DNA of 64,000 bases from NCBI RefSeq assembly GCF_001447785.1, contig NW_015161949.1:836224-900223 (forward strand), given 5' to 3'. The notes under the pieces were generated by a model. It was given only the letters and a program-made list of their open reading frames with translations. It made no database searches and was not told where the DNA came from. Position 1 is the stretch's first letter; each line of letters opens with the position of its first letter. A program made the translations under genes and the position numbers. Shown here in pieces: positions 2,268 through 44,675 of this stretch. This DNA comes from Gekko japonicus (taxonomy: Eukaryota).

Positions 2268-2465
2268 TGTGCACCTGGAAGTCATAGCGACCTCTAACCC
2301 CTACTGGGGGTCCGAAGGATAGTCAGAGAAGTGGATGAATAAAGCCTGCCCCTGCCTCCCACCTTTGGTATTCCAAGGAGGTTTCCCATCCAAGTACTTG
2401 CCAGTGTCAACTCAGCTTCGAGATCTGACAAGATTGGGCTTGCCTGAGTTATCCAGGTCTGGGCA
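2268..2465 (-). mobile_element. 5S rRNA-derived SINE
   Basis: Minus strand gcccaatcttgtcagatctcgaagctgag...agtacttggatgggaaacc matches the 5S rRNA internal control region. Ends in a (CA)-rich tail. Confidence 0.65.
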
Positions 2466-2505
2466 AAATAACATCAGTATTCTTAACAACAAGAACAATA
2501 ATAAC

Positions 2506-11419: not shown

Positions 11420-11980
11420 GTAAGAATGGGGCCGTGTAGGAATTTTTCACTTCCACCCGGAATTGGCAGATTGGGTGGGGGTGTTTTTGCCTACCCTGCA
11501 CTGGGATCAGTGGATTTAAGTGTTGGATGTGGTGGTCAGCAGTTAAGTAGGTTGGTCACTTGGCAGGTTGGTGCGGGCAAGAAACCGGAACCGGTGAGCA
11601 CCTGAGGGCAATTTCCCCATTAGGGAACAGGGGGTCATCAGGAACTGCCCTCGGATTTTTCAGGTCCAGGGTAGGGAATGGTGATCACCTCCTCTGGGAA
11701 CCTCGTAGGGTATGCTCCGCTCTGCAAGTTGTCAGGCTTCAGGAGTAGGCGCTCCTATGTGGCGACCAGTTTGCTGGGCTGCTGGTCGCGAGCCAAATCG
11801 ATGGGTGACCCGCCCGAGAAAAGGGCAAGGAGGTTGGTCAAGTGAATGACACCTGCCTTGCCTGTTCTGTGCTCGCTTAGATGGTCCCTTGACGCAATGT
11901 TATGTTAAATAGTTAATAAAGTGGCCCTTGTTTACTTCCAAACTGTTGTCTGTCTCGTTATTCCGACTGGGGGGGGCAAT
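11420..11980 (+). mobile_element. Terminal-repeat remnant of an Ngaro/DIRS-type element
   Basis: Colinear similarity to the reverse complement of 42045-42620: shared ggggccg.gtaggaatttttc...gcctacc motif, agttaataaagtggccc, and terminal gggggcaat. Confidence 0.7.
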
Positions 11981-17798: not shown

Positions 17799-19256
17799 TA
17801 TTTTTTTTGTAAATATTTTTATTGGGTTTTTTTAAACAAACAAATACCCACCACCTACAACACCACACCATTACCACTTATACATAATTGCTTCCAAACA
17901 GCAACATAAACATTTTCTTACTTATCCAAGATTACCAGCATCCAATATTTATATTAATTATAGTTATCTTTCTTGCTCCTTTTGGGGTAGACCTCTAACT
18001 TCCTATAAAGATGGGAGCCATTTTCTGTCCTGTTTATACCATTTAACTCAGTTCATTTGACACCAAAATATAAATGCCTCTAGAATGAGGAAAAAAATAA
18101 AATAAATAAATTTCTGTATATTGTCTTCATATATCTTCCTAACCACATTTCGTACTTTCAACTTTAAATCTCCCATTTAACGCCTATTCCAAGACATCTT
18201 TTTAATCTACATAGTTGTTATAAACGCCCATTATAATTAATATATTTTAATTCATTTCCTTTTGAACACAACCAAATAATAAATAATACTGATATTATCA
18301 AACATTTCATATCCTCATCTTAAACTTACATTTATTCATTTCTTTTTGCTCTAATCTACATAGTTGTTATACACACCTGTTATAATTAATATTTTTAATT
18401 CATTTCCTTTTGAACACAACCATCTTTCTCTTTTTAACTTTTCTCTCTTCCAAACATTTCCCTTATTTATTTCCTTACTTTGTTTCCGTTCCAAAGTATT
18501 TGTTAACTCCATATCCTCCGTTTTCAGTTCAACTTCTATTGTCTGTTCCTTGTTCTCCTGTTTCTGACTACATACTTCCACCGTCTCAGTATTCTCCGGA
18601 AACTTAAAGGGTCCTTGAAAGTTTTCAGATGCGGCTCTAAATCCTTCTTTAATGCCCTCCTGAATTTTTTCTACCATTGCCTTGAAGAACTGTTACATCA
18701 TTTCTCTAGACAATTCAATCAATCCCTCTTCCCTTATTCCAGCCATCTTTTTATATTTTGTAAGACCAGTCTCAACAGTCGTATCCCCAGAGCTCAATAT
18801 CTTTTCCCCACAATACCAAAAGTAAAAGTTTATAGATACTTAGCCAAGTCTCTTTTCTGGCCGCTTTCCAATTCATGTCAAACCAGTTCGGGGATTCTTT
18901 TCTTTCCTCTTGAAGGTAGGTATGCTTTCTATTTATTTTTCTTCGTCACTGCTTTTTATAATCCAAGTTTAAAAGGTAAGAAAGATAAAAAACGCAGATG
19001 GTCGTTTCTCCGGAACATGGCAGCCATGTTCCCTGCTGCCCGCTTCAGCCTTGGGGCTGTTTCAGACACCTCCCCCACCCTGCCAATTGCGGGAAAGGGC
19101 CAAAAAGATGCCCCCTGCTCCATCCCCCACCTCCGGGGGGATGGTCGAGCACCCCCGAGCCTCGGGGGGCTCAAATAAAGCGGGAACAATTCGGGCGGGG
19201 ACAGAGCTCATCTCGCTCCCCCCATCCGTCGAAATGCCGTACCAGAAGTCCTTCCT
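17799..19256 (-). mobile_element. ORF2-less L1-dependent retroelement, relative of 2506-4792
   Basis: 24-bp TSD aaatggaaaggatgacttagtatt (17775-17798 and 19257-19280). 5' end ggacttctgg, CpG-rich UTR, and 3' end aacccaataaaaa plus A-tail. Confidence 0.85.
18351..18746 (-). pseudogene. Coiled-coil ORF of the retroelement, with one in-frame stop (MAGIREEGLIELSREMM*QFFKAMVEKIQEGIKEGF...)
   Basis: The upstream ATG at 18746 is in frame with the track ORF 18351-18677. Its TAA aligns with an E codon in the 3080-3418 homologue. Confidence 0.6.
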
Positions 19257-19347
19257 AAATGGAAAGGATGACTTAGTATTGACAGCCAAGCAAGATGACT
19301 CCTCAGTACTATATAAATAACTGTGCAGTTGCACAATAAGAATCAGG

Positions 19348-19911
19348 GAGGAATTTCAGACAGACAATATAATCTGGAAGAGGAACAGTTCCCAAACGGT
19401 TTCTGGTCTGTCATTTCAGACAGAACCATTTTAGAACCAGTTCCCTAACGGAATATATTTGAAATTTCACACAAAAACGCTTCTGTCCCATTTAGGAAAC
19501 GAGGCTGAGGCATTTTACCTGTCAACCACTTCCATGTAGTCTTCAGTTTCCTCTCCCAGTTCCGATGCGCTTTTCCCTGCTTTTTTTTTTAACGTTCGCT
19601 TTATAGCACTATAACGCTATAACGCAACAGCATTATATCAACCCCATTGGAATGCCTGGAGTGTTGTGTTATAGCACTATAGCGCTATAGCGCTATAAAG
19701 CAAACGTTTTTAAAAAACCCCGGAAATCGCACGTGCGGGCGAAAAACGGCGGGGGGGAAGCGGTGCAGTCTGAAATGGCAAACCGTTTCAGATCCAGCTC
19801 TTTACCGGAAGGGGAAAGCCATGTGTGAAATGGCAGCCCTATACCGGTTTACTCTGCAACGGATCAAAAATGGCTTCAAAACGGGTTAAAAAGGATAATG
19901 TGAAATTCCTC
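19348..19911. mobile_element. MITE with palindromic core (Harbinger-like)
   Basis: 11-bp TIR gaggaatttca/tgaaattcctc, 3-bp flanking repeat agg, and a central inverted array of (gc.ctata.) units at ~19590-19710. Confidence 0.75.
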
Positions 19912-20290
19912 AGGGTTTCCTTCTTAAAGAGAAATGTGGGATGGAATGTTGGGCTGAGGGGGCTCTTCTCACCTTCACATACTTCAAATCAACAGCAACG
20001 AATGTGTACCTTTACTTTACCTAGTGTGTATATATGATTGTATAAAAGACAGGAAATCAGAACATTATACTGAATTTAGCTCTTTGTCCCTTCCCCTCTT
20101 CCAACCTTTCCACCCGCCTCTCTAATGCACACGCACATTTTAAAAAATCTTTATGCTTGGTTGGGCTTGTATCATCATCTCATTAAAACTTTGCCATGCA
20201 AATGTATCATAAGTGTTGCCTGAAGATTTCTGTCTCATGCAAAATTTAGCTTAAATTCTTCTGGCATCAAATACTTTCTTATGCACAAAC

Positions 20291-20470
20291 CTTCTGTTTG
20301 CTTTGCTGACGCTCCGTCTTAGTTGGCTCTCATGGTGATTCATTATCTCATGATATAGATTTCCAAGTATCATCTTTGCATTGATTTTTATATCTTTAAT
20401 AACCTCTCCACTGAAGATGGCTCCACTTGGTGTCATTGATCGCATCAAAAATTCAAGGCTTACAGAAATA
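20291..20470 (-). CDS. Candidate 180-nt exon (ISVSLEFLMRSMTPSGAIFSG...SVSKANR)
   Basis: ccctctag| acceptor and AAG|gtttgt donor. Open phase 2->2 frame in non-repetitive sequence. Confidence 0.3.
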
Positions 20471-21709
20471 CTAGAGGGCTAATTGGTAGCAGAACATTTC
20501 AGACTTAATTTTAATGCAGTCTTAATCTTAAGCACTAAACCTACCTGAAGGTTTACTCTTTGAGGCTAAAGGGAAAGTTTGAGTATGTGATAGAAAATTA
20601 CTTGGTGTGAAACAGGCTAGGCACACAGAAAATCCAGATAACTAGATGAGTATTATTAAAATCAAGTTGCATCAACCTTAAAACCCTGGATTATTAATGT
20701 TTCTCAGCCCTAAGTCCATTTGAGTCCCTAGAACCATAAAAGTATAACACCAGCTATCAGGCAGAAAACTTTTAGCTAAATGTCCATTCAGAGGGTTAAA
20801 TGTGCTCAGATGGATTGATTCACCATTGTGCTTCTGGTTTCAGCAGCAGCATAAGAACCATTCTTTTGGGGCTAAACATATTCTGATAGAAGCCTTTGAA
20901 AGCCTGTAGATGTCTGTAGCTAGTTTTGCAAAACATTAACTCTAATTGTAGATGTCTCTGTGCTTACAGGGGGTCTGTGTTTAAAGCCTTTCGTCTAATG
21001 TTCAGGTGTTATTAACATCAGGTTAGACTCAGTAGATTCTGTAGTCATTTGCTGGTGCAGAAGGACTACTGGTGCAAATACCCATCTACAAGGGTATCCA
21101 TCAGCTCTTCAGTAGAGGGGGAAGCTCTTTAATTGTACTAGAGACAATATAAATGTTCTAGTAAAATTTCCAAGGGTTTGTTATCCTATGAAATTCTTTG
21201 GACTGGCTTTTAAATCCTCCTCAACAGATCTAAGCCCACCAGATTTCACATTGTCTCCAGGTGTGAATGCTGGCACGAGTCAGCTGCAAAAGGAGTTCTT
21301 GAAGGACTTCCATACAAGTCTAATTAGCTGTCATAGTCTACTGATATATTACTTAATTAGGAGCTGGGTTTTCATCCCACCACTCATTTTCCATATTTTG
21401 AGTATGTCAGCAAAAATATTGTGGTTTGGCAGTGGTTTCAACAACCCAGAGCAAAGAAAGAATAATTAAATCAAAATAAGATTTATTCGAGGAAAATAGT
21501 TGTGTCAGACATATCAAAACAAACATAAAATAGCATTCTCAATATACATCCAATTCCATCTCTGTCTTAAATGTTATGGAATCATATTTTCTATATCATT
21601 ATTAGATAACACAAGCAAGTCTTCCCCCCATCCTGGCAGAAGTAATTCAGGCTGGATCTATTTTATGGGAACAGTGCATTCAAATTTAAGCACATATATT
21701 GTCTCTAGA

Positions 21710-21810
21710 TATAGCTCAAGATGGGTAGCCATGTTAGTCCGTAGCAGTAGAAAAGAGCAAGAGTCCAGTAGCATCTTAAAGACTAACAAGATTTGTGCCA
21801 GGGTATGAGG
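21710..21810 (-). mobile_element. Penelope-like terminal fragment
   Basis: gggtagccatgttagtc...gtagcatcttaaagactaacaa is similar to 36250-36340. Confidence 0.55.
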
Positions 21811-22089
21811 TTACGTGTGTGTGAATGGATCTTCTGTCTGTAGATGGCTCATGGCCCAATAAACAATTCAAATCCTGATGACTCAGAAATGTACACACAC
21901 ACATGTACACACACACATACATGCACACGTATAGGAAATCTCATTAGTATAATTAGCTGATGTGGGAGCCATATAAATTAAATGCAGGATGTCCCAGCAT
22001 AAGCAGGACAGGAATACATTGTCATGGACACACACATAGGCATTTCTTTTCATCAGATAATATGGGTTGCACTGATCTTCCGTATATCT

Positions 22090-22292
22090 GTGTGTTGTGT
22101 AAAATGCCGTCAAGTTATAGCTGACTTATGGTGACCCCAGTATAGGGCTTTCAAGGCAAGTGAGAAGCAGAGGAAGTTTTCCATTGACTTCCTCTGCAGT
22201 GTCTTCCTTAGTGTTCTCCATTCCAAGTACTGACCCTGCTTAGCTTCCAAGATCTGACAAGATTGGGCTATACCATGCTGCCTTCCTCCCTT
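22090..22292 (-). mobile_element. 5S rRNA-derived SINE with BovB-like tail
   Basis: gcccaatcttgtcagatcttggaagctaagcagggtcagtacttgga (5S-like), then ggggtcaccataagtcag...acttgacggca. Confidence 0.7.
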
Positions 22293-22388
22293 CATATATA
22301 TATATCCATACATTTTTAAAATAATGGGGGGGGGTGTAAATTTGAGAGTCCCATTGACTTTAAAGGCCTGATTCTTCTATATACTTGA

Positions 22389-22834
22389 CTAGTAAGAAGG
22401 CCCGTTGCAGAAAGAAATGCAACAAACTATAGACAGAGGGTTTGAGAGAGCGCTCCTACCTGCAGCAGTGGCCCGCATCCTCCCCACAAACAGCTGTATG
22501 AAAGGCAGGTGGGGGGAGATGGGTGGCATGGCACCAAAGGAGAAGGCCCATGCCAGCCGCCCCTCTTGGAGGCCTCCCGGGGCTTCAGAAGCCAGCTGGG
22601 TGGGGGCGCAAAGACGGGCTGGCGGCCGGGGCTCCCCACTTCTGACTGACTCTCTGAGCAGGTGCTGAAGCGGTGGTGAGCGAGGCACAATGAGGGCAAG
22701 ATGCTGGGTGCTGGTTCTGGGGGCCACAGTAAGCCCATCAGCCACGCAGCCAGTGGAGAGTGACACATCAGAGAGCAAATGGATTCGGGAGTGTGTCAAG
22801 AGTCCATGACCAAAACAGAATTATATATAATGAG
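22389..22834 (-). mobile_element. Non-autonomous Helitron-like element
   Basis: Minus strand starts TC(tc)attatatata and ends with a subterminal hairpin (gttgca/tgcaac) and CTAG-T. Its 5' part is similar to 62761-62890. Confidence 0.5.
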
Positions 22835-23419
22835 AGGCTTTCACCCAATCTGAGGCCTGGGCCAACAGTCTGACATTCTGTGTCATGTAAAGGCTATGGA
22901 TGCCACTTTGACCAAAATATCTGTACTTGACAATTTTGTAAGAAGCTGTCAACAAAAATGGAAGTGTTAAATAACAAAATTATACACAACAACTTGTATA
23001 TAATCACAGGGTATATAATCTAGCCACTTGTGAACACACTTTTGTTTCTGCTTTGGCGCTGTTGGGAATGTTGTGTCTTGGCTATCTGTCCTCTGACACA
23101 CAAGGATGGGGCTTATTGTTTTTAAATTCCTATGTCTTTAAATAAATTGATTTTTGCTACAGAACACAGTCTTGCTTTTTAAACTCAGTGTATAAACTGT
23201 TTAACACTGTAGTCTAAATCATCCACCTTTGGTAAGCAAGTAAAAGAGGAACAACACTAACAGTGCCTTATAACACAATGTCAAACCTGTTTATTTTGTC
23301 CCTTAATGCATCTTATGCCCAAAGGCTCAGAATTAAGTATCAGTATTTAACATTCTAATGTGTCACAGCTTTCCAGCTCATGGGCTGTTAGTTGCTTTCA
23401 GTACTAATCAGGTTGCTGG

Positions 23420-24555
23420 CTCTCATTATGATTTACGCTGATGACACCCAGCTCTATCTGATGTTGTGTGGCCAATCGGACTCCAGACTGGAAGATCTGG
23501 ACCAGGTGTTGCAAGCCGTGGCTGGTTGGCTCAAACTGAGCCAGCTGAAGCTGAACCCAGTGCCTGGGCCGGGGCAGTTTGGGGGTAGGGATCCCACTCC
23601 CGACCTTTGGTGGGGCACCATTGGTGCCAGTGCCAGAGGTTAGGAGTTTGGGAGTGCTCCTGGATGCCCAGGTAGCAGCCACTGCTAAGTTGGCCTTTTA
23701 CCATCTTCGACTCATTCGGCAGCTGGTTCCCTTCCTCGGCCATGATGACCTGGTTACAGTGATCCATGTGATGGTCACCTCAAGTCTAGACTACTGTAAC
23801 GCTCTTTACATGGGGCTGCCCTTGTCGCAAATCCGGAAGCTGCAGCTAGTGCAGAATGCCACAGCCAGGCTTCTGATGGACCTTCCTAAATGGGAGCACA
23901 TCCAGCCTACGCTGAAGGCACTGCACTGGCTGCCAATAGCTACCAAATCTGCTTCAAGGTGCTGGTACTTACCTTTAAAGCCCTATATGGCCAGGGTCTG
24001 AAATACCTGAGGGACCGCCTGTCGCCCCATATACCCCAGAGAGCACTACGGTCAGGGTCACAACACCGACTGACCATTTCAGGCCCTAAGGCTCACTGTC
24101 ACCAGGGCCAGGGCCTTTTCAGTGGTGGCTCCACACTGGTGGAATGAGCTCCCAGAAGAGATCAGGGCCCTCCGGGATCTTTTACAGTTCCACAGGCTCT
24201 GCAAGGCAGAGCTCTTCCACCAGGCTTTCAGTTAGGAGCTGCCAAACCACTACCACCAAGATCTGTGGTTATGGGTTGGCCTGGCCTGGAGATTGTGCCA
24301 CACCATCACGCAATGCCGAAAGATCACTGACTTGGAAACAATTGCTTGTATATTACCTGGTATGCCGTCTTAATTTTCGAACAACTATTACTATCACTAG
24401 CACTTTGATTATTTGATTCTTTAAATTTTTAAAATGTTTTAACTTTTGCATATGATTTTATGGCACTGTGTACCAATAAATGTAAGCTGCCCTGAGCCTG
24501 TTCGTGGGAAGGGTGGGGTATAAATAGAATTAATAAATAAATAATAAATAAATAT
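23420..24555 (+). mobile_element. 5'-truncated L2 LINE (RT C-terminal half, frameshifted)
   Basis: YADDTQLY, LKLNP, SLDYCNALY.GLP, LQLVQNATARLL and LHWLP motifs, with a tgtaagctgccctgag...(aata)n tail. Confidence 0.9.
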
Positions 24556-26118
24556 TTTATTTGTTATATTCTTAGCACTTGCTTTCACATTGTGCAGTGA
24601 GAGTTGCACAATGTGAATCAGGTTTTATTCAGGGATGGACAGGAAAAGTGATGGTCTGGACCTACTTATTCCCTTTCTGCTAAGATCAGTCTTGGTTTGA
24701 ATCAGAACGAAGTTTTTTTTAAAGTTACCAAGTGAAAATGGACATGCAGCCTATCATTTGCATAACATCCAAGCAGGTTGAAATGTCCATTGTGCTTTTC
24801 GCTGTTATCCATTTTGGTCATTTTTTTTGGGAAAAAAATCTAAGTGCTGTATTATAGAGATTCTGAACTTGTTCCTAAATGAAATGGAAATCTGAATGGG
24901 ATCACAAGTCTAAAGAAGTGCTGTAGGAATTCTTCTACGCTGGGTTACATTTGAAGGGTAAAGCTGGAATGCTGAGACATTCCATAATATGTGTGGGTCA
25001 GGTGAGCATGATATGTTCAGCTCATAAAAACAAAAGCAGGAGATTTATACAGATGTGTGGCAGCATCTGGATAGGATTTAACTGCCTTCACATCTGCACC
25101 TGGACATCAAATGTAAGCAGAGAAAAAGGCCCTCCTGTTTGCCCAGAGCAGCAAGCTAAGAGAGGGCTCTGAATGGTGCTGCCAGATCAAACATTATCCA
25201 GATGTCTCTTGCATTGTCTCCTTTTCCACACATTGTTTTAGTATTTTCATTTTTCTTTGGTTTGTTAATGTTATATGCATGGAGCTTGAGTGGTGGTAGT
25301 GTGGAAGTCAATGAAAATGAAGCAGAACTTGTAAACAAGTAAGTCCTAACCCAAGAGGTCAATTCCAAAGAGAACAGTTCGTGTTAACAGAAAGTATGTT
25401 GTTGAATTTCCATCCCCCCCCCTCAATAGTGAAGATTTTATCTTTTAGCTAAACAAAACTGAAATGAAAGAAATGATTGAGGATTATTTACAGTTTACAG
25501 CTTTCAAAAAGGGTGTCAGGTGAGATTTACGGACAATCTACATATTCCACCAAAAAGCCAGTTGGAAAAAATTAATATTTTAACATATTTTGGGAAGGAG
25601 AAGGCTATTGATAACAATGACAAGTATTTCTTCTCTAGTTCATTGGTTTTTCTTGCACAGACAGAGGGGGGGACATCACTGAAGACATGAGGGAGAAGTA
25701 GTGGGCAAGTGATGAAAAAAAGTTAGATCACCAACACCTCCTTCATCTTAGGTATGGTAAGAACACTATGCCCATTCACACCTGAAAGGATAATGCTGCA
25801 ATTGCATTGGGAGCTAAATAAATCATCATAGAGTTTGAAAGACTATAGAAAATTCTGAATAGCAATACTTTGGAGGAACTTTATTTGGATTCTAAAGAAT
25901 CAACAAGTAAACAAATACTGTCAGTAATGGATAAAACAACGCTTGTTGGCACGCAAACTACCACAAAATGTCACCCATTTGTGCATTTAGTCTTCACTGC
26001 ACACTGAACTGTCATCTTATGGTCAAAAGTCAAGTAAAATTCACATTGGTTTTTGTTAAATCTTGGGTTTCTTTTTCCTTATAGTGCTGATTTGACTCCA
26101 TTAACATATAGTGTACTG

Positions 26119-26580
26119 TCAGGGCCACAGTGTGGTGTCTATGGGTACTATGGCACCCGCCAACATCTTTCCTAGTGCCTGCCAAGTGTTTTTTAAAAGT
26201 GGGTGGAGCCATTGGGGTTTTGCCCAGCAGGGCTTTTGGTTGGCCATTGGAGATCAGATTGGCTGTGCAGGTTTAAAAAAAAAAAATGCTTCAGCAACAG
26301 CTGCCAGAACAGCACAAAGTTCTTCACTGTGTGACTGAAGGTAAGCTGTGTATATGGAAGAAATTATTTTTAAAAAACATGTTAATTTTAAAAGGCATCC
26401 TGTTAATAAGAGCTTCTTCCTGAAATGTTGAACAGTTACTATTAGATTTTTGCATAACCTCACTCCCTGACATTTTGAGGTTGGCTCTGCCTCCAGGGGC
26501 AGCCATTTTGACGTTGTTCCCACCACCCTGTGTCAGAATTCCAAAGGTTCCTGCAGGCTTAGAAAGATTGGAGACCCCTG
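26119..26580. mobile_element. hAT-like non-autonomous DNA transposon
   Basis: cagg...ggagacccctg termini of the caggggtctcc type. Confidence 0.5.
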
Positions 26581-27148
26581 ATTAAAAGGCCCAAATCTTC
26601 ACTTGTTTGCTTTTTGTACGTTGCTGCAACAAACAGGGGGGGGGGGGTTGTCAAATGAATAGTTTGTTTTTTGAAGCTCAGAGCCACCTCTACTTTTTAC
26701 TTCATTTGTGGTCTTTGGTAACTCGTGTGTTTATCATATGGCAAACTTACAAGCATGAGAATTATCCTGCTGATGACATTCAAAAATATAATACCTCTGA
26801 GCATGGAAGTTCCATTTGCTTTTCATGATGAATAGAAGGAGAAAGCAATGGGAAGAACTAGGATGAAGGAGGAGAAGGAACTCTGGGGAAGTGGAGTCTT
26901 GTCAGGTGTGGAGGGAGTGGCTTGACAATATAAGTAGAAAATGTAGTGCTATGCTTGCCAGAGATATTAGCTGTCACTTCATGTCTCCCTGTGTGTATAA
27001 AGTGTTGTCAGGTCACAGCTGATTTATGGTTACCCCATAGGATTTTCACGGCAAATGATTAAGCAGAGGTTGTTTGCCATTGCCTTCCTTCGAGAACTCT
27101 TCTTTAGTGGTTTCCCATCCAAGTATCAACCCTGCTTAGCTTCCAGGC

Positions 27149-27508
27149 CAGGGCTATTTTTTGGGCAGGAATGCACAGGAACAGACTTCCAGCTGGCTTC
27201 AGAGTTGGCCACGCCCACCACAGCCAAAACGTCTGCATGCGTGGCTACAGAGGGAAGGCCTGGAGAGCACCCCCCTGGTGACTCTGAGGCAGGGGGGCCA
27301 GGGGGGCCCTGGAAGGATTGGGGAGGCCTGTCCAAGGGCCACGATGTGCCCGGGCAAGCCAAGGGAAGGTATGGGAATGTGGCCTAATATGCTAATGAGC
27401 TGTGCTGTCAGGGGTGTGGCCTAATATGCCAATGAGTTTCTGCTGTTGGGTGTGACCTATTATACTAATGAGTTCCTGCTGGGCTTTTTCTACCAAAAAA
27501 AAGCCCTG
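27149..27508. mobile_element. hAT MITE inserted in a 5S-derived SINE (~26990-27148)
   Basis: TIR cagggct.ttttt/aaaaaaagccctg and a perfect 8-bp TSD ttccaggc (27141-27148 and 27509-27516). A partial related copy lies at ~13547-13640. Confidence 0.85.
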
Positions 27509-28373
27509 TTCCAGGCTATACTATACCATTCCACATCCCCCATGTCTCTGTAGTTCAGTGTAAAATGGGGAAAGCAGACTCTAATACAGGGCATGAACAC
27601 ATTTCTCAGCTGTTTAAAATTAAAATGGTATTGATTCCACACTGATATGCAGATGAGAAGTGATCATGCAAAATCCAGGTTATCACACAGGAATGCTTGA
27701 GATCATACTGAAAGTACTTTACAGAACTACTTTACATACCATTTGCTAGAGATCTCTAGATTCAAACTCAAGCAGATGTTGGCTAATTTATAGGACCTCA
27801 TCATTTCATGTTGCATTACGGTTTTCACACACAGGAAAGTTATATTGTATATATGTAAAAGCATATTGTGAGAAAGCATCTGGCCTGTAACTGTCTGAAG
27901 AACTCGTTTTCTGCAACTGACGAGTCCCCATCCCCACATCTGTGGATGTGCTAGGTGAGTATATGATGGAACATTCGGTTTCCTGACTCAGATATTCTGA
28001 TCTCTGCCCTCACCGAGGAAGGCAATAGCATTTTGTACCTGATGAGAGATGTTCAGTTAGTCTGGAAGTGTGGATCAAAACAATCCCATGGAAACCATGG
28101 AAATCTGAATACCTGGAACTCAGCACTGCTCTGGAGCCCAATATTGCACACTTGAAATCAAAAATGTAAATATTGTTTCAAAGAAAATGTCTAGGAATAG
28201 ATGTTCTAAGTCCTTCTCCAATACAGTGCTCATAAGATGAGCAATTACTGACTGACAAATAAATGCAAAGTTGGGCTATCTCCCACTGAAACTCTTCCCA
28301 TGACTCCAGTTCAAATAGAAACCTGCACACAATGCAGAGTTCTTTAACAAGGGTGAAAAAAACCTGCTTCCTT

Positions 28374-28383
28374 CTCTCACACA

Positions 28384-28428
<45 letters not shown>
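28374..28428. repeat. (TC)n(CA)n microsatellite
   Basis: Directly visible. Confidence 0.95.
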
Positions 28429-28429
<1 letters not shown>

Positions 28430-28553
28430 AGCACACTTACCTCCCCGTACTCCCCTCTCCTTTGTAGTGCTGAACACAGAAACGAATCTAAGAAATCTGG
28501 GCAGTCTATCAGTTTGCCATGGTTCATTTTAGCTAATCCAGACATCTAGCACA

Positions 28554-28693
28554 NNNNNNNNNNNNNNNNNNNNNNNNNNNNNNNNNNNNNNNNNNNNNNN
28601 NNNNNNNNNNNNNNNNNNNNNNNNNNNNNNNNNNNNNNNNNNNNNNNNNNNNNNNNNNNNNNNNNNNNNNNNNNNNNNNNNNNNNNNNNNNNN
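28554..28693. other. Assembly gap
   Basis: Run of N. Confidence 1.
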
Positions 28694-29607
28694 TTGTCTG
28701 GGACAAGAACTCATCATAATGGACTCAATAATAAAACACTGGCAGACATGCTGTGTGCAGCGCCCATCTACGCTAGAGCTTTTAGCGTCCTTAATTGATA
28801 CAGTTCCTGCAGGAGAAGTCTAGAAGGCATTTTTGTGTGGCTTGACATTTTACAAGTCGCTTTCTTTCCTTTTAGCCAGGGCCAGCCTTTCTGTGCGTGT
28901 TCCTCATTGCTATATACCTTTACATGAGAGGTGCCTTGTAATTGCAAGCTGGTAAATAGCTCCTTTTTGCATTCCTTGAGCAGCTGAACAAAAGGAGAGT
29001 TCAAGAAGGTTCACAAGAAGACAAGTGTTCAACTGCTGAATAAAGGACAGACCCCAAAAGAATTTTTGCATTAAAAAGCCTGTTCAGAAAAACAATAAAT
29101 GCCAAATGCTGAGGGCCAATTCATGTATTCATTGGCATATGGGAGCTATCTGTTCTTGGCTAGCTGGTCATTTGCACTTTCTATTTGCAATCTTTTGCAA
29201 CCCTGCAAAAATAACTTTTGCTGAAGTGTGATCCTGTAAATAGCAGTGACAGTAAACTCCCAGCAAGCCTGGAATAGACAAAATGGAATTTCAGACAGCT
29301 ACTATGTTCTCAGTGGCTCTTAACTGGCTTTTGTCTCAGTGATGTGCCAAATATAATTATTACCTCCCTAATTTTCTGATTTTCTTTGATCTCCTAGTCA
29401 TATCCCCTCAAGTTGCAGTTAATTGTTTTGAATATTCCATGGGAACATACCTCTGTTACGTAATCAATCCTTTGTGGACTTTGGTTGTGTTGTGCAGGGG
29501 CATCACTATGCTCTCCCATGGATTTGAACAAATCTGTGTGCCCAAAACCCACAAAAGTGAATGAAAACATTTGCAGATCTGTTCAGTGTGCACTTTGGGG
29601 TCCACGC

Positions 29608-29955
29608 TAGGGATGGGCATGAACCAGGAAAATGTGGTTCATTTTGGTTCATGGCATGCCTGGTTTGTGAGGCATGAAGTGGACACCCTGCAAGCTACAC
29701 ACACCAAATGCACAGGCTGGAAAATTCTGCTCCCCCCCACCAGTGCTCCAAAGTTTGGTTAACATTCTGATTGACTGGGGACAGTCTGACTGTAAATGTG
29801 TCCACTCATTAACCACCATGAACCATCATGAACCACTTGACAGTTCATAGAAAGTTCGTGCCAGTTGACCTGCCATGAACTTCAGTTCACAAACCACAAA
29901 CTGGCCAAAATATGTCATGAACGTTCGTTGATGAGCCAGTTTGTACCCATCCATA
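29608..29955. mobile_element. hAT non-autonomous element, same family as 1239-1986
   Basis: tagggatgggcatgaac...gtttgtacccatccata termini with 8-bp TSD gtccacgc/gtccacac. Confidence 0.8.
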
Positions 29956-30411
29956 GTCCACACAGACTTCAGAATTAGAGCAATAATCTAGGCCTGTGGG
30001 GATCAAGCATAATTTAAGGGGATAAACCTCCAAAGAAAGTTTAGAAAACTGGTAAAGGGCCAAAAGTTAAAAACATCAATAGGTATAGACAAAAGTATAT
30101 GTGTTTATTTCAAAATAAAGTCCAAATAAAGCCTCATAAAGTAATCAAAGTGACAAATACACAAAGAAACATATATGACCTGACACATTTCAGCCCACAA
30201 GAACCTTCTTCAGAGGTCAAATAGTACAGAATACAACTTTCAACAAAGCCCCTGTTACACTTGTAAGGCAGTAAACAATTGATATAGGACCAAAAATGGA
30301 ATGTTCCAATCTGGAACTGAATGACACACAACAAATTTTGTGTGACCACAAATGTATTTGGCCCTGTGTCAGAAGCAATTACATATATTGGAGGAAGTAA
30401 CATTGCCAATA

Positions 30412-33400
30412 TTTTTACTTATTTATTTTTTGTATTTGTATCTCGCCCATCCCGCGAGCGGGCTCAGGGTGGGTCACATAATCTTTCAACAATACAATAA
30501 GGTTTAAAAGCAACATAAACATTTAAAATCAGTAGTTATAGCTACTGGTGAAAGTTCCAACCCATTAATACAGATGGATATGGCCGGTTGCCGATAGATG
30601 GATGGTCAGCAGGTAGGAGACAGCAACCTCGGGGAGGCCACATGTGGGAGCCCGCTGCCTCAGCCAAAAGTCTGGTGGAACAGTTCCATCTTGCAGGCCC
30701 AGTGTAACTGAATAAGATCCCGCAGGGCCCTGATCTCGATGGGGAGCATGTTCCACCAGGTGGGAGCCAGGGCAGAGAAGGTCCTGGCCCTGGTCGAGGC
30801 TAGACGGACATCTTTTGGGCCAGGGACCGCTAGGAGATGTTGATTATTAGAGCATAAAGTTCTTCGAGGTGTATACGGGAAGAGGTGGTACCTTAAATAT
30901 GTTGGTCCCAGGCCATATAAGGCTTTGAAGATTATTACCAACACCTTGAAGTGGATCTGGTACTCAACTGGTAACCAGTGCAGCTGGCAAAGCACATACT
31001 GAACATGAGCCCGCACAGGCATCGACATCAGCAGGCACACCACCACATTTTAAACCAGCTGTAATTTCCAGATCAGCCTAAGGGTAAGCCTGCGTAGAGC
31101 AAATTGCAGTAATCAAGCCTGGAAGTGACCATTGCATGGATCACTGTAGCTAGGTTTTTTTGGGGGGGAGATAGGGCTTCAGTAGCCTGATCTGCCTAAG
31201 ATGGAAGAATGCAGATCTGGCAACTGCGGCAACCTGGGCCTCCATGAACAGAGAGGCATCCAGTGTTACTCCCAGGCTCCTCACTATCTGGGCTGGCACC
31301 AAAGGTACTCCTTCCAGTGTGGGGATCCTGGTGCCCACATCCATGCTCCCTCGACCCAGGTAGAGGACCGCCATCTCTGATGGATTAAACTTCAACCGAC
31401 TCTGCTGCAACCATTCAGCCATAGCTTCCAATGCCTCACCCAGCTTTCTGGGAAAAGAAAATGGATGGCCATCCATGAACAGATAGAGCTGGGCGTCATC
31501 AGCATATTGGTGACAGCCCAGCCCATAACTCCAGACTAACTGGGTGAGGGGGTGCATATATATGTTAAACAACATTGGTGAGAGGATTGCCCCCTGTGGC
31601 ACTCCACATTCTAGCAAGATCCTCTCATCAAGTGCCACCCTCTGTCCCTGACCATGGAGAAAGGAGGAAAACCATTTCAAGGCAGTCCCCTGAACTCCTA
31701 CGTCAGCGAGGCAGTGGGTCATAAGATTGTAGCCGACCGTGTAAAACGCTGCCATTAGGTCTAATAACAACAGCAGCACTGACCCGCCTTGGTCCAGATG
31801 TCTACAGAGGTCATCTGTGAGAGCAACCAGAGCCGTCTCCATCCAGGGCAGAAGCCAGACTGGAAGGAGTCAAGGATGGAAGCGTCATCCAGGAAAGCCT
31901 GGAGTGGTTCGGCCACTGCTCTCTCAACTACCTTACCCAGGAACTGTAAGTTCAATACTGGGTGGTAGTTGGTCAGGACCATTGGGTCCAGTGATGGATT
32001 TTTCAAGAGCAGATGAACCACCGCCTCCTTCAAATCCTCTAGGAAAGTCCCACTAGAGAAGGACAAGTTGATAATTTCTCCCATAGGAGCCCAAATGCTC
32101 TCCCCACAAGATTTAACTAGCCAGGAAGGGCATGGGCCAAGGAGGCAGGTAGGAGGTCTCACCACTGCCAGGATCCTGTCAACTTCCTCCTGGGACAGTC
32201 GATCGAAGTGATCCAATGCCAGACCAGAAGACAGACAAGGGGCTTCCAGTCTCTTTACTGTCTCAATTGTGGCCAGGAGGTCTTGGCAGAGTGTCACAAT
32301 CTTATCTGTGAAATAGTTCACAGCTGCCTCACAGCCAATAGCCAATTCCCTACTATTTGGTCTGCCCTGTGGCAGAGTTGTAATAGACCGAATAATTCTA
32401 AACAATTGGGCTGGGTGCGATCTCGCAGATGCAATGGAGGCCGTGTAGAAATCTTTCTTTGCAGCCTTCACTGCCAACTCATAGGCCTTCATAAACATCC
32501 TATAAGATGTTTGTGACACCTTGTCACAAGCACACCGCCACCTTTGCTCTAGCCGTCTTAGCTCCCACTTCATCTTCTGTAGCTCTGTGGAATACCACGG
32601 TGCTGCTTTGGTGTGAGGGCATAGAGGGCACCAGGGGCGGTCTCATCAATGACTTCAGAGAGCCGCTTATCTCAGTCCTCCACCAGTTCATCCAATGAGG
32701 CACTAGGGGGCATTAGATCCCGCAGAGCTTCCTGAAGCTGACTAGGGCCCATTTGACTTTGCAGGCGAGCATAAGTACACTCGTCACCTAAACAGGGTGG
32801 ATATGGTATGCTCAGCCGGATCTTCAGGGCAAAGTGGTCAGACCATGGGACTACATCCATAGTCATCAGATCCACATGTATCCCCATCCCAAAAATCAGA
32901 TCCAGCATGTGGCCCGCTTGGTGCGTGGGAGTCGATATAAACTGGGAGAATCCTAGTGCCTTCATGGACGACAATAGATCCCTGGCCTGGACAGACACTG
33001 CATCATTGACATGAACATTGAAGTCACCCAGGATCAGAAGCCTGGGATATTCCAGTGCCCAGCCAGATACAGCATCTAACAGGTCGGACAGGGTATCTGC
33101 CAGTGCGTTAGGTGGTCAGTGCACCAGCAAGATAGCCAAATTCTCCTCGATGTCACATGCCAGTCCAACACATTCAATGCTGGAGATTGTTGGGGTGGGA
33201 AGCAAAGCCACACACACCCCCGCCCATACATCTATGACTGATGAAAGACTGAGAACCCAGGTGGGGTAAGTTGGTTCAAGGTGACAGTTTCAACATCCCT
33301 CACCCAGGTCTCAGTCACACAAGCCAGGTTTACCTGTGACTCCATAAGATAATCACAGAGCACATCAGTCTTATTATTAATAGACCTGGCACTGAATAAC

Positions 33401-33900
33401 ACCATTGTCAGAGAAGGGTAAATTTTCCTAGCCCCACAACCAATGCTCCCTCTAAGCTGTGGAGTCTTGTGAGCAAAAATTCTCCTTTGCGAGGTACTGG
33501 CATTAAGCTGTGAGCAAGAAATTTGGCTGCTGCATAAATTACTTTGCTCTGGAGTCATCCTTCCTGAGCTGAGACAAAAATGTGTGAGCTGGAGGCTAAA
33601 ACACTGTGAGCTAGCTCACACTAACTCAGCTTAGAGGGAACACTGCCAACAACCAACATCTCTTGGGATGGGACCTAGGTAGGAAGAAATCCGAGCATTT
33701 CCATATCTCTGACTCCTTCCATTCCCGTTAATGGAAGAGCACCTACGCCCACCACTATATCTCCCCCGTGCCATAATCGCTGGTATCCCTGATCCTTGCA
33801 TGCTCCTCCTTCATCGGTGTTGTCAATCATAATGCTCTCCAACAACCAGCAGAGGCTGTAACTATCCAAATTATAAAACCTACACAGCTCTTCGCAGACC
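30412..33900 (-). mobile_element. Long decayed L2 LINE with APE endonuclease and RT (multiple frameshifts)
   Basis: ARSINNK, CVTETW, GDFNVH, PTHQAGHMLDL and SDHF (endonuclease); FQSGF, GVPQGAILSPMLFNIYM, HQYADD and LHWLPV (RT); (aaat)n tail at ~30412-30440. The 5' boundary is approximate. Confidence 0.92.
33441..33645. mobile_element. hAT MITE inserted in the L2
   Basis: TIR caatgctccctctaagctg/cagcttagagggaacactg and 8-bp TSD cccacaac/ccaacaac. A second, truncated copy lies at ~52495-52678. Confidence 0.8.
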
Positions 33901-35729
33901 CTTGTCTAGACTAGATACCCTGTTGTCTCCTCTCACTATCTAATAAACAGTACAATCAATATGATCAATTCCAATATATATAATTCTATTAGAAAATCAA
34001 TGGCTCAATTAATCAGTGGGAAAATTAAAATTAGGTTCGGGGAAAATTTATATAGGTCATTCAAAGTTACCCTACCTCTAACCTCCCCACCCCCACCACA
34101 TTAATATGTTCCTTCTAGTTTAGGTCCTAAGAGTACAAGTAAAATTGCCTTATCTGGGCCAATGTAACATCAATATGTATACATATGTTTTATTCTTTGA
34201 AGGTTTTTGCTTGGTTGACTTAGTGTCTCTTCCCTCACTTTGTGGGGGGGTAATTTAAGGGGATGCAATTTCTCTCACATTACTATCTTTTAAGGATTCC
34301 TAAACATTTTGACTTGGTTTTTGCTCTAGTACAGAAATTTTACAAACCTGCCATTTCTACAAATATACTTTTAGTCAATTGAATTATTACATTCAGGGTT
34401 TTTCCCTCTAACCATGCTAACAGGCAGTCTGTTATACTGTAACAACAGGCATTGGTCATCTTTCCTAAATGAACGTATGTTCGTTTTTTAGCATGTCAGA
34501 AAGGGAAGGTGTTAGATGGATTGTTGCCACTGATTTAGAATGTCAGGATCTTCCACTGAGAAAGAAAGTTATCTAATCTAGTTTTTATACAGAAGATCAC
34601 ATGCTTGCCACAAGACTGTGTCGGGGAAGCCTACTTTTTGTTTCTTAACTACTAAGTTGTTGGGTACTGTGAATCATTAAAAAGGTAACACATTACATGA
34701 TTGTGAGCATGGCTCTAAAGATAGGCAGGGAAGGGGTACTTATGGGAGCCTTGGAAGTGGTATGTACAATGCAGGTACAAGAAAACACATGCCTTTTATT
34801 CTTCTTCCAGTCTATGAAAAAGTACTAGTTTCAAGCATCTGGACACAGGCCCAGATTGGTGCTGGGAAGCTGGCCATTGCTAACAACAAACTTTTTGATT
34901 ATATGCTGTTGATTTGGAGGAAGTTCTTTGTTGTTATTTTCTTTACTTGGATCATTTTATCCTTTGTTTTCCTTTTGCTCTTTTTTGTCAGAGGCTGTCT
35001 CCATAAGTAACATTTAAACTTGCTTTTGCATCCTCCCATGTTTACAGTGTGAATGTCAACCCTGCACATACATTCCATTTAAAATGGATTGTTTCCACTT
35101 TTTTATTCTGCTTTAACCTACTTTCCATGTGATGCATTCTAGAAGGAAAATGATTGCTTAGGTCACTTGTTCAAACCTCTTATTTTCTCAGCTGAGAATA
35201 TGTGATCTATGATTGTGCACATGAAAGACTAAAACCTAATTCACACATTCCAGTATTTCCCACTAGCTGCAGCTACTTGGTGGAAGTAACATATGAGCTG
35301 ACTACAAATTTTTGTAACAATTCACACTCACTAGAAGGGGACTCTTGCACATATGAACTAGCCAAATTGTTCTGAAAATGTTGGCCATCTTAACTCTCAG
35401 GTTTTTATACTCTGCTGATCATCATCAGGAGACTATGTAATTAGGTGCTAGACAAAGGATGCAATGTTACAGCCACTAACTTAGCAGTAAGCTGTTTTGG
35501 ATACAGTGGGACTTATTTCTGAATCAATATGTATGAAATCAGCTGCATAGAAAGGCAGGGTAGCTTGGAAGCTATGAGTCAGGAAGTCTCTCAAATGTTG
35601 TCTTTGCTATCAACTTAGTAATTGGCTTTTGCCAGGGTAGTTGGATGTGGAATGGCATAGTATAACTGGAAGACTCTGCAGAGGAAGACAAAGACAAACC
35701 ACCTCTACTTAATCGCTTGACTTGAAAAC

Positions 35730-41700: not shown

Positions 41701-42548
41701 ATTTGTAGTTTGGCATGTATGCAGAAAGTGGGGAACTTTTTGGAAACTATTTCCTTTGTTCTCTCTCATACATGGTTTAGAAAACAAAGACCATGGAGCT
41801 TAGAACTAGTTAGACAGGATGTTTGTTATTGTAAATCCAGTGTAACCCTTTTCTCCTTTTATTTAGTAAAGTCTTTTTCTTAAACTGTATACACACATAT
41901 GGCTGCCTTCCTTACTCTGCTAAATATCCCAACAACTATAGCCCATTGTGGCCTTCTAGGCCTCTGACAGCCCATCCCTTTTTGTAGTACCAGAAGGACA
42001 GCAAAGCTCAGAGCTTCACTGAGCACATCGTGAACTGCTTGGTGATTGCCCCCCAATCCGGAAGAAAGACAGACACATTTCTTGGGTACTGAATGGGCCA
42101 CTTTATTAACTTCATTAACAACAATATCGACAACAATGAACAGCAAGGGCACTACAGATTGTGGCATGACCAGGCCAGGGGTCCTCGACCCCTCCCCAGC
42201 CATTTGTACTAGGGCGATCCACCCAGCCCCAGCTGGTAGCCAAATGTATGGCTCACAACCAGTCAGCATGGCAAGTGGATGATGGCCAGGGATAAGCCAG
42301 AACCCCCGAGCCTCGAGGCTCAAAGGGATGGCAATCCCGTGCCATCATCTAGGCGGTCAGCTTTCCCCGCCCCGGGCCTCAGGGCCCAAAGACTGTACTG
42401 GCAAGACCCCTATGCCCCAATCGGGGTTATATGCCGGTGGTCACCATGCCACAATCTGATAAACTAACATCCTGCCGCTAAAGTGACCGTCCTATTTAAA
42501 CTCAGCCACACCCCAGCCAATTTTTCCCTATCCTCCGTTGCAGTATGA

Positions 42549-42606
42549 GGTAGGCGAAAACACCCCCTCCCTTGGCCAATCTGGGAAAGGGCGAAAAATT
42601 CCTACC
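42549..42606 (-). other. Conserved hairpin with U-rich internal loop (ENE-like RNA element)
   Basis: GGUAGG-AAUUUUU-11 bp stem-loop-UUUUCG-CCUACC. The same fold is present at 11436-11494 (+) with compensatory changes. Confidence 0.6.
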
Positions 42607-42745
42607 CGGCCCCCATAAAGAGCAACCAGCCAATGCCCATACTGTCAACAGGGTGGGTGGGTCGAGCGATCAGGCGCGCACTGAAGGGGGGAGGCAGGGG
42701 CCGGCCTCACTGCTCCGGCCCCGCCCCCCGTTCAGTCCCGGATGC

Positions 42746-43152
42746 NNNNNNNNNNNNNNNNNNNNNNNNNNNNNNNNNNNNNNNNNNNNNNNNNNNNNNN
42801 NNNNNNNNNNNNNNNNNNNNNNNNNNNNNNNNNNNNNNNNNNNNNNNNNNNNNNNNNNNNNNNNNNNNNNNNNNNNNNNNNNNNNNNNNNNNNNNNNNNN
42901 NNNNNNNNNNNNNNNNNNNNNNNNNNNNNNNNNNNNNNNNNNNNNNNNNNNNNNNNNNNNNNNNNNNNNNNNNNNNNNNNNNNNNNNNNNNNNNNNNNNN
43001 NNNNNNNNNNNNNNNNNNNNNNNNNNNNNNNNNNNNNNNNNNNNNNNNNNNNNNNNNNNNNNNNNNNNNNNNNNNNNNNNNNNNNNNNNNNNNNNNNNNN
43101 NNNNNNNNNNNNNNNNNNNNNNNNNNNNNNNNNNNNNNNNNNNNNNNNNNNN
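42746..43152. other. Assembly gap
   Basis: Run of N. Confidence 1.
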
Positions 43153-43314
43153 CCGTGCCATCATCTAGGCGGTCAGCTTTCCCCGCCCCGGGCCTCAGGG
43201 CCCAAAGACTGTACTGGCAAGACCCCTATGCCCCAATCGGGGTTATATGCCGGTGGTCACCATGCCACAATCTGATAAACTAACATCCTGCCACTGCAAA
43301 GGCCAAGCCTCTGC

Positions 43315-43913
43315 TTAGGCCGTGCTCCCATTACTTCCTAAAGCTGCTCGAAGCCCTTGCTGAATCTCGTCCAAGAAAATGTCTAAACCTGCCTCCGACA
43401 GATGCACACCGTCACTCCGGTATAGATCTGTCGAAGCCACATGTATGCCAGGATGAGGCAAGTATATCCCTAGGCCCCCTTCAAGTGCTTTGCGAATTTC
43501 ACTGTTAGCCTTGCGCCGAGCTTTATCCATAGCCAAGGGCTTACAAGATGCCCTCCAAACTAAGCGTGGCACCATGGCGGACCATATAATTACCGTCCCC
43601 GGCCAACGCTCCTTAATAACTCGGAAATCTTCCTTCACCTGCAAAATCAAGGCCTTCCCCTTGATCAGGCCGAGATCATTTCCCCCTAAATGAATCAACA
43701 GGATATGTGGAGGGGGCCCAACACGCCCCTCAAACAACAAATACAATAAACTGGGCCATTGTAAGCCACGGTGCCCGAACCATTCCAGTGTGGCCACCTG
43801 ACTTAGCCCCAGCTGTGATCCCATGGGCCCACGCTTGGCTCGTCGTGCCGCCCAAAAGATAAAACTGTGGCCGCAAATCAAGATCCGCTTCCGCTCTGCC
43901 CGGCCACTCGTGC
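43315..43913 (-). CDS. SGNH/GDSL-type hydrolase (esterase) domain of the retrotransposon
   Basis: Block I ILICGHS, block III IHLGGNDL and block V DGVHLS..G in an uninterrupted frame. No ATG upstream of block I; preceded by a polypyrimidine tract and CAG. Confidence 0.85.
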
Positions 43914-43970
43914 CTGTAATGACAAAACAATCAACACAACAAAAGAACAAATTCACAGCACGCACAGCCC

Positions 43971-44375
43971 CTACTGACCGACCAGAGGCCGAACATACGC
44001 CCTATAGGCGGAGGACCGCCATCTACCCAGCCGCTGTATGTCCCTTTCAGGATATCCCATAGCAGCCGCTGTAGACGCTGCCCCAATCCTAAAAGAATGT
44101 GTCCCGAATCGTACCCCAGCAAGGCCAATCCGCCTCAGGGCAGCGGAGGTAACGGCCCAGAATTGGTGTCTGGTTAATGGACTGCCATCCTGGTGCTGAA
44201 AAAGCACACCTGCGCCCAACCCCCGCACAGCAAGGTAAGCTGCTACCGCAGAAACTGGGCATAACTCCTTTTCCTCACAGAGCCCAATCGATACAGTTGC
44301 CCCTCGACGTCGTTGATCGGTTTTAGAATGTCGCAAAGTTAGGATGACCCTGTCCCCCATCAAACGTTCAGTCCC
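43971..44375 (-). CDS. Tyrosine recombinase, C-terminal catalytic part
   Basis: SKTDQ, LCPV, HSFRIGAAS and LGRWRS.AY..YVR motifs of DIRS/Ngaro YRs. The N-terminal half with the first catalytic Arg is missing. Confidence 0.92.
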   Translation of the reverse strand, partial: GTERLMGDRVILTLRHSKTDQRRRGATVSIGLCEEKELCPVSAVAAYLAVRGLGAGVLFQHQDGSPLTRHQFWAVTSAALRRIGLAGVRFGTHSFRIGAASTAAAMGYPERDIQRLGRWRSSAYRAYVRPLVGQ

Positions 44376-44675
44376 AGATGCGGCGGTTGCCGCGCCCTGC
44401 TCTTCCTCCTGCAGGGCGGCAAAGGCGGCCCCCGGACTGCACGGGCGAGCCGGCAGCCCGGGAACCAAATTCTCAAGTTATACAGGCTTGGCCTATGAAC
44501 TCAAGCCTGGGTTTCATGTTCTCAGGGTGGTATAGTAGCTGCCACTTCTATACAGGTTTATTAGACCTCCACTGGGGGCAGGGGATCTCCTGTGCTTGGC
44601 TCCTGTCTCCTATTGCTGCTCGAAGCTGCAGCAGGAGAAAAAAAAAATTAAAGTCCGTCAGAATAAAAACACTAA

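Follow-up and report, generated by a model that had tools for sequence, protein, structure and literature searches.

An ENE-like hairpin in the terminal repeat of a gecko Ngaro retrotransposon, a candidate poly(A)-binding RNA element

The Locus and Its Host Element

The window, i.e., the whole stretch of 64,000 nucleotides of Gekko japonicus DNA that was analysed, harbours on its minus strand the 3' part of a mobile element which is classed here as a Ngaro retrotransposon and which hosts the hairpin considered in the present work (Table 1). A tyrosine recombinase fragment, an ORF encoding an SGNH hydrolase and a direct repeat were found around the hairpin, in agreement with the terminal-repeat context proposed by an earlier reading of the letters alone (hereafter the sequence-only reading). 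The hydrolase ORF has homologues in lizards (E 1e-75), its closest proteins being annotated as “uncharacterized” in geckos and other lizards (59-65% identity) with weaker matches in a frog, and roughly 50 annotated homologues are present in lizards and frogs. The lizard homologues are Gag-esterase fusion proteins, of which the esterase part alone matches the window while the Gag part is unmatched; as such, the Ngaro copy in the window is, as far as its sequence goes, 5'-truncated and devoid of the segment A1 and of the 5' half.

In vertebrate Ngaro elements, an SGNH hydrolase ORF follows that of the tyrosine recombinase. Ngaro elements are defined by split direct repeats arranged as A1...B1-A2-B2 (PMC9210276). 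The hairpin is positioned in A2, between the two B copies, together with a GC-rich hairpin, the motif ATTGGC at 42634, 42580, and 42521, and a TATA-like TTTAAATA (42500-42493) located 21 nt upstream of the A/B boundary. The outer edge of B2 is marked in reads by a fall of DNA depth from 22669 to 81 at 42045. An assembly gap of 407 N (42746-43152) is found inside the B1/A2 part, where it covers the B1/A2 junction, and is probably due to the B1-A2-B2 repeat being hard to assemble. A very GC-rich and near-perfect hairpin borders A2 on its upstream side (42685-42735, minus strand); the miRNA-like Rfam matches obtained at 42673-42744 correspond to this GC-rich hairpin and were rejected as weak and at chance level. 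Within B2, the stretch 42364-42421 exhibits the highest DNA word depth of the terminal repeat (82,000-106,000 vs. 63.5 for single-copy DNA), contains a short hairpin (GGGCC/GGCCC) along with a GC box, GGGGCGGGG, and may be common to other repeat families.

The polyadenylation signal constitutes, besides the hairpin, a second island conserved with a diverged copy of the terminal repeat found elsewhere in the window (copy 2, or 11k copy, with AAUAAA at 11915-11920, as opposed to copy 1, or 42k copy), and a read-depth island extends over this signal and the terminus (42045-42131). The distance from the hairpin to AAUAAA, which had been given as about 440 nt, was measured as 442 nt in the 42k copy and is 421 nt in the 11k copy. 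The same signal is presumably also present in B1, upstream of the hairpin, and transcripts could end there.

Table 1. Coordinates of the features discussed, on the numbering of the window.
Feature	Positions	Strand	Basis and remarks
Tyrosine recombinase fragment	43971..44468	-	Pfam Phage_integrase 32.4 bits (cut-off 27.1)
Ngaro ORF, SGNH/GDSL hydrolase	43315..43965	-	GDSL-like 26.1 bits, below the Pfam cut-off of 32.9
Segment B1, first 143 nt, rest in assembly gap	43153..43295	-	99.3% identity to 42337-42479
Segment A2, upstream end lost in N gap	42480..42745	-	Split-repeat comparison
ENE-like hairpin copy 1 (whole)	42548..42607	-	Fold, descriptor scan, pair counts, read variation
Apical loop, 11 nt, core AUUGGC (inverted CCAAT box on DNA)	42572..42582	-	Read variants
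Segment B2, ending at the 3' terminus of the element (...GGGGGGCAAT, 42045)	42045..42479	-	Repeat comparison
Polyadenylation signal: AAUAAA (42107-42102) and GU/U-rich downstream element (42076-42061)	42061..42107	-	
ENE-like hairpin copy 2	11436..11494	+	Same architecture; 96.9 bits (model R1)
Third, more diverged hairpin	19057..19113	-	Model R1 16 bits, E 0.05 (weak)

Fold and Strand of the Hairpin

Read on the minus strand from 42606 to 42549, copy 1 consists of GGUAGG, AAUUUUU, the upper-stem hairpin, UUUUCG, and CCUACC. The lower stem pairs 42601-42606 with 42549-42554 (6 bp, or 7 bp with one additional G-U pair, 42607/42548), the strands of the internal loop are AAUUUUU on the 5' side (42594-42600) and UUUUCG on the 3' side (42555-42560), and the upper stem of 11 bp joins a pyrimidine-rich 5' arm of 11 nt (42583-42593) to a G-rich 3' arm of 11 nt (42561-42571), the positions of partners summing to 85154. 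This fold, which the sequence-only reading had put at 42549-42606, was recovered as the minimum-energy structure (ViennaRNA), with -27.8 kcal/mol, a z-score of -3.6 and 75% of the ensemble, and only one of 200 shuffles was as stable. The plus (antisense) strand folds worse (-18.5 kcal/mol, z -1.2), which bears out the view of a sense-strand structure rather than one confined to the antisense strand, and the wobble pairs are all G-U on the sense strand, where the antisense strand would have A.C. Both the 42k and the 11k hairpins persist when folded in a context of 240-276 nt. Folded as DNA, the sense strand is weak in the two copies (-8.5 and -8.8 kcal/mol, z -1.2 and -2.4, the former values being those of copy 1), and the antisense strand of copy 1 remains at the level of shuffles (-6.2 kcal/mol, z 0.05).

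A descriptor that required 5 bp or more in both the lower and the upper stem and no fewer than four U per side matched three times in the 64-kb window vs. 0.09 times per shuffled window, and matches with at least 16 pairs in total occurred in none of 100 shuffled windows; with a relaxed descriptor, 10 matches were obtained in the window vs. 1.5 expected. A hairpin with facing U4/U5 tracts, an upper stem of 9 bp and a weak lower stem of 5 bp is also present at 7461-7510 (minus strand), in AT-rich surrounding DNA without recognisable element, and scores 8.8 bits with the covariance model R1, which was built from copies 1 and 2 and used to scan the window without filters.

Related Hairpins in the Window

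Copy 2 belongs to a diverged A-B fragment of about 560 bp (around 11420-11980), which is colinear with the 42k terminal repeat but in which two islands alone are clearly similar to it, namely (i) the hairpin (78% over 68 nt) and (ii) the polyadenylation signal with the terminus. Its fold reaches -24.8 kcal/mol (z -4.2), with none of 200 shuffles as good, and its 3' loop strand, UUUUUG, faces the other U tract in the minimum-energy structure; in both copies, taken alone or in context, AAUUUUU thus stands opposite to UUUUCG (copy 1) or UUUUUG (copy 2). Between the two copies, all 11 pairs of the upper stem are kept despite seven substitutions, five pairs being invariant, five changed on one side (always via G-U), and one changed on both (U-A to A-U). 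The pair counts and the fold therefore agree with the earlier statement that the copy at 11436-11494 retains the 11 inner pairs and both U tracts. Pairing over the two copies amounts to 100% vs. 54-62% when partners are slid; covariation from these two copies alone is not significant (shuffle control, 236/500), and the reads described below furnish the stronger evidence.

The core of the third hairpin (19057-19113) is shared by BLAST with both other copies. It exhibits a wholly different lower stem of 5 bp (GGGGC/GCCCC), a 5' U5 tract, an upper stem of 13 bp with one bulge and the loop AAUUGGCAGG, and the GAAA of its 3' strand is base-paired to the U5 tract, leaving no facing U tract. The ATTGGC core of the loop is the same as in the 42k and 11k copies. 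GC-rich hairpins similar to those in the A segment of the 42k copy are found upstream, which gives the locus the look of an A segment from a distant subfamily; TATAAAA is found about 110 nt downstream. With a new lower stem at the same place, this copy supports the conservation of the hairpin as such, and it argues that facing U tracts are not universal, at least one lineage keeping the hairpin without them.

Conservation and Variation in Public Reads

Four public runs from the same organism, comprising two raw RNA-seq runs, a DNA contig set and what is probably a set of RNA contigs, were aligned to 41900-42745 at a likeness of at least 80%. Over 42538-42624, the DNA word depth is 19,000-35,000, when neighbouring bins are at 2,300-4,000 and the single-copy flank at 63.5. 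Word depth is not copy number and gives an order of magnitude only, which here corresponds to hundreds of copies of the module. Reads and contigs leave the copy in the window at 42541/42549 on one side and at 42614/42615 on the other, and those departing enter mutually consistent flanks resembling the 42k and 11k flanks. It follows that a hairpin of about 75 nt is common to diverged Ngaro subfamilies, in which the surrounding segment A has drifted beyond the 80% limit.

The results on variants rest on the best 40 of 113 variant rows. Two positions of the 3' arm vary together with their partners at closely matched frequencies in RNA reads, namely 42565 (C>A in 21/53 reads, 40%) with 42589 (G>T in 26/66, 39%), which turns C-G into A-U, and 42568 (T>A in 21/53, 40%) with 42586 (A>T in 28/64, 44%), which turns U-A into A-U. 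The loose-end consensus at 42581 (six reads, agreement 0.92) shows the 3' arm to be changed also at 42564, the partner of which, 42590, is G>A in 19/66 reads. Phased from the matched frequencies and the “cleanest” column, the combined read variant would keep 11 pairs, three of them changed on both sides. These compensatory pairs, together with the depth island, substantiate the conservation and covariation across diverged copies that had been claimed.

One-sided variants at 42588, 42590, 42592, and 42607 exchange G-U and Watson-Crick pairs on the sense strand. All nine one-sided transitions, i.e., four in reads and five in the 11k copy, are compatible with wobble pairing, where neutrality would give about half (p ~0.002). 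Among the best 40 of the 113 rows, a single variant would break a pair, 42571 C>A, which falls on the base pair that closes the apical loop, and variants affect none of the 13 positions of the internal loop vs. 12 of the 33 positions of the upper stem and apical loop (p 0.009). Within that same selection of 40 rows, the U tracts of the RNA, which are A tracts on the DNA (42557-60 and 42594-98), were free of variants; the U tracts, which had been reported as conserved, are so in the main subfamilies, but not in the copy at 19057-19113 with its GAAA. In the loose-end sequences, the 3' loop strand is UUUU followed by CG, UG, or CA. As for the apical loop, it varies in length as well as at 42572-74 and 42582, with no variant at 42575-81 among the best 40 of 113 rows. 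The lower stem adjoins the clipping boundaries of the reads.

The doubly compensated variant accounts for about 2-3% of the DNA depth vs. about 40% of the RNA reads over the hairpin (run X21), which suggests that the RNA signal mostly comes from preferential transcription of a few loci or of a single small subfamily. Since RNA reads, like RNA contigs, run across the hairpin into the flanks on both sides, the hairpin lies inside transcripts. The two mate directions are similarly represented in the RNA libraries, which look unstranded, and no pile-up of RNA reads at a 3' end was seen over 41900-42745 in these libraries.

Searches for Relatives

In Rfam, no match reached the gathering score in the 64-kb window and no ENE-type match was found in 42300-42745 with E up to 10; the lack of an Rfam match for the hairpin counts against the ENE reading. 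The exact pattern of lower stem and U tracts gave no match in IMG/VR and none in JGI metagenomes. In 596 Gb of bacterial DNA, 18 matches to the lower stem and U tracts were dismissed as chance, all being without the upper stem and folding at -5 to -17 kcal/mol, and they serve as a negative control for the ENE reading. A protein-guided search of metagenomes yielded 15 distant SGNH loci (28-36% identity), downstream of which neither the descriptor nor the model R1 detected a sense-strand homologue of the hairpin, which likewise counts against the ENE reading, and the same kind of search returned no SGNH locus from the viral collection. On two metagenome contigs encoding a 36%-identical SGNH hydrolase (L001 and L002), a weak hairpin with a U/U internal loop lies just downstream of the ORF, in antisense to it (L001 738-790 and L002 1471-1524, minus strand of the loci).

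A similar motif in the 3' UTRs of reptile/amphibian LINEs had been mentioned by the sequence-only reading; no such motif adjoining a LINE was found in the 64-kb window. The same reading knew of no description of such an element, and a full-text literature search linking tyrosine-recombinase retrotransposons with triple helices returned nothing; as far as this search goes, the statement holds for this class of retrotransposons but not for transposable elements (TEs) at large, where ENEs have already been predicted (PMC7583470).

Candidate Functions

With its fold, its strand asymmetry, its conservation island, its compensatory changes and its presence in RNA, the hairpin is very probably a selected sense-strand RNA structure. 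That it would instead be a chance palindrome or a neutral relic devoid of function appears extremely improbable: while the two close copies in the window give no significant shuffle statistic on their own and genomes are richer in inverted repeats than shuffles are (the 10 relaxed matches vs. 1.5 expected), such a view is at odds with a sharp conservation island among diverged subfamilies, with compensatory changes at matched frequencies, with the wobble compatibility of 9/9 one-sided transitions, and with the contrast between 0/13 internal-loop positions and 12/33 other positions carrying variants (best 40 of 113 rows). The criteria of an ENE were taken from PMC7583470, PMC13541005, and PMC12501189. 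An ENE is defined as a stem-loop whose internal loop is rich in U and borders on G-C pairs, with a basal dinucleotide (PMC7583470, PMC13541005), and the G-C pairs adjoining the U-rich loop are needed for A-minor contacts (PMC7583470; PMC12501189). The architecture first assigned to the hairpin from its letters agrees with this published definition, inasmuch as it comprises a U-rich internal loop next to G-C pairs as well as a basal dinucleotide. On the upper side, an invariant C-G pair directly adjoins both U tracts, while on the lower side two G-C pairs are separated from them by AA on one strand and by CG, UG, or CA on the other.

The hairpin is accordingly put forward, tentatively and with some doubt, as a predicted single-domain ENE, and this function is the single most likely mechanism, ahead of another role of the RNA and of a promoter role of the DNA. 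We infer that the RNA is sense, ends at B2 and binds poly(A). Under the proposed mechanism, the A2 copy would be included in any transcript reading through B1 and terminating at the AAUAAA/GU-rich signal that lies close to where B2 ends, the hairpin then being about 465 nt from the poly(A) tail. The tail would fold back and engage in Watson-Crick pairing with one U tract and in Hoogsteen pairing with the other. Four to five U.A-U triples would result, which the upper stem would close through its invariant C-G pair, and the base of the hairpin would form a dinucleotide pocket as in KSHV PAN; deadenylation of the genomic RNA would be slowed. The downstream polyadenylation signal with its GU-rich element, conserved also in the 11k copy, speaks in favour of such an ENE. 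Several elements speak against it: (i) only four U are invariant on the 3' strand, (ii) on both strands, a spacer of 2 nt lies between the U tract and the lower G-C pairs, (iii) the hairpin is 442 nt away from AAUAAA, and B1 presumably has a poly(A) signal upstream of it, (iv) the loop has a CCAAT box as its core and belongs to a segment resembling a promoter, so that part of the conservation may be at the DNA level, and (v) the diverged hairpin at 19057-19113 has its 5' U tract paired to GAAA.

This last copy, which turns the U/U region into a U-A helix and yet keeps the hairpin, fits the idea that a long hairpin is what matters, and as such favours a cis-acting RNA structure with another role, e.g., in CTE-like export of the unspliced genomic RNA, in recognition by Gag or the reverse transcriptase, or in priming or strand transfer when cDNA is made, where the U tracts would be a protein-binding loop or tandem U.U pairs. 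The same evidence for a selected sense-strand hairpin applies to it; furthermore, no primer is known for tyrosine-recombinase (YR) retrotransposons, and in the case of DIRS-1 a hairpin at the 3' end has been suggested (PMC7192593). [quoted passage not shown]

At the DNA level, the segment A may be U3-like, acting as promoter DNA in A1 and forming 3' untranslated RNA in A2. The conserved feature would then be an inverted CCAAT (Y-box-like) site for NF-Y flanked by T tracts, and the RNA fold would be secondary. In line with this, the ATTGG core of the loop is present in all four versions seen whereas neighbouring positions of the loop vary, A2 has three sense-strand ATTGGC boxes, 54-59 nt apart and the middle one being the loop of the hairpin, out of 38 in the whole window on both strands, and the TATA-like TTTAAATA (42500-42493) precedes the A/B boundary by 21 nt. 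As the main explanation, a promoter module is clearly unlikely, since it leaves unexplained the maintenance of 11 pairs through compensatory or G-U-only changes and the strand asymmetry, and since RNA reads cover the hairpin and both flanks. Promoter and RNA roles could coexist, A1 acting as DNA and A2 as RNA. Some tyrosine recombinases use folded single-stranded sites, and the structure could likewise form in single-stranded cDNA, as a folded recombinase site (cf. the integron attC) or as a primer for the second strand. Its arms are conserved in structure and variable in sequence, as would befit such a site, and YR retrotransposons do make single-stranded cDNA intermediates (PMC7192593). The first-strand cDNA being antisense, its wobble pairs would become A.C mismatches; in addition, the antisense DNA of copy 1 folds at the level of its shuffles (-6.2, z 0.05), the DNA of the sense strand does not fold strongly either (-8.5, z -1.2), and the hairpin is away from the termini of the element and from the circle junction. 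Such a role is very unlikely, and a DNA cruciform or single-stranded DNA as the main explanation was rejected on account of the weak DNA folds and of the G-U bias of one strand.

Taking the ENE and promoter functions together, a joint reading can be formulated, which as a whole is rather unlikely: the hairpin would be an ENE that clamps poly(A), and as such the first among the tyrosine-recombinase retrotransposons of animals; in A1 its loop would serve on DNA as the NF-Y CCAAT box of the promoter; and in A2 the RNA would clamp the tails of B1-readthrough transcripts only, thereby selectively stabilising the replication-competent genomic RNA over B1-terminated messages. If the ENE function is true, host evasion by means of ENEs would extend to vertebrate tyrosine-recombinase retrotransposons, and this in an abundant and transcribed lizard Ngaro, at a time when the RNA biology of these elements (promoter, primer, and RNA ends) is almost unknown. 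The natural series of covarying stems, along with the natural “closed-loop” variant of the 19k type, would then inform on the minimal needs of an ENE. Even if it is not an ENE, the hairpin is the best-conserved non-coding piece of these Ngaro elements and offers a handle on their replication.

Comparison with Known Systems

With the NF-Y-bound CCAAT/Y-box promoter elements known from the terminal repeats of retroelements, the hairpin shares an inverted CCAAT pentamer, invariant in its loop and located upstream of a TATA-like box; arms of 11 bp with compensatory changes and a G-U bias of one strand are in contrast not a property of such sites.

The triple helix of the MALAT1 type associated with mascRNA occurs at dozens of loci in the anole lizard (Zhang et al., 2017, as cited in PMC10869381). 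Like the hairpin, it is a stability element with a U-rich internal-loop stem present in vertebrates, lizards included. It differs in that the hairpin has no conserved encoded A-rich tract downstream, no tRNA-like structure and no Rfam match, and that its U tracts are uninterrupted by C or G. About 25 nt downstream of the hairpin, GAAAAAUU (42519-42526, minus strand) could pair along its whole length with AAUUUUUC of the 5' loop strand. A MALAT1-like reading based on GAAAAAUU (42526-42519) was discarded, the motif being absent from the 11k copy and the stretch poorly conserved.

Over 200 ENEs have been predicted, including in plant, fungal, and slime-mould TEs and in “stickleback fish retroviruses” (PMC7583470). 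In plants and fungi, the terminal repeats of TEs can contain ENEs (PMC13541005); in the plant retrotransposon Evade a functional ENE raises the stability of the RNA and its mobility (PMC12501189). [quoted passage not shown] It is on the other hand single-domain rather than double, belongs to an animal host and to a Ngaro with split direct repeats rather than to an LTR or hAT element, and has no recognisable conserved adenosine triad or 3'-end pocket.

The hairpin can also be compared with the single-domain ENE of KSHV PAN. The two differ in several respects, since the hairpin has two extra A on the 5' strand and hence a 2x2 spacer where the bulge of PAN is one-sided, has only four invariant U on the 3' strand, and displays neither sequence similarity to PAN nor similarity in Rfam, its binding to poly(A) being predicted. 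The ENE of PAN lies about 120 nt from the tail, as against about 465 nt for the hairpin. At its base, PAN exhibits an AU dinucleotide bulge, and such bulges are common (PMC13541005); the hairpin has its counterpart at the same place on the 3' strand, i.e., CG, UG, or CA. Both are moreover stem-loops with two facing U tracts, an upper C-G pair directly adjoining both tracts and a G-C-rich lower stem, and both are located upstream of a canonical polyadenylation signal.
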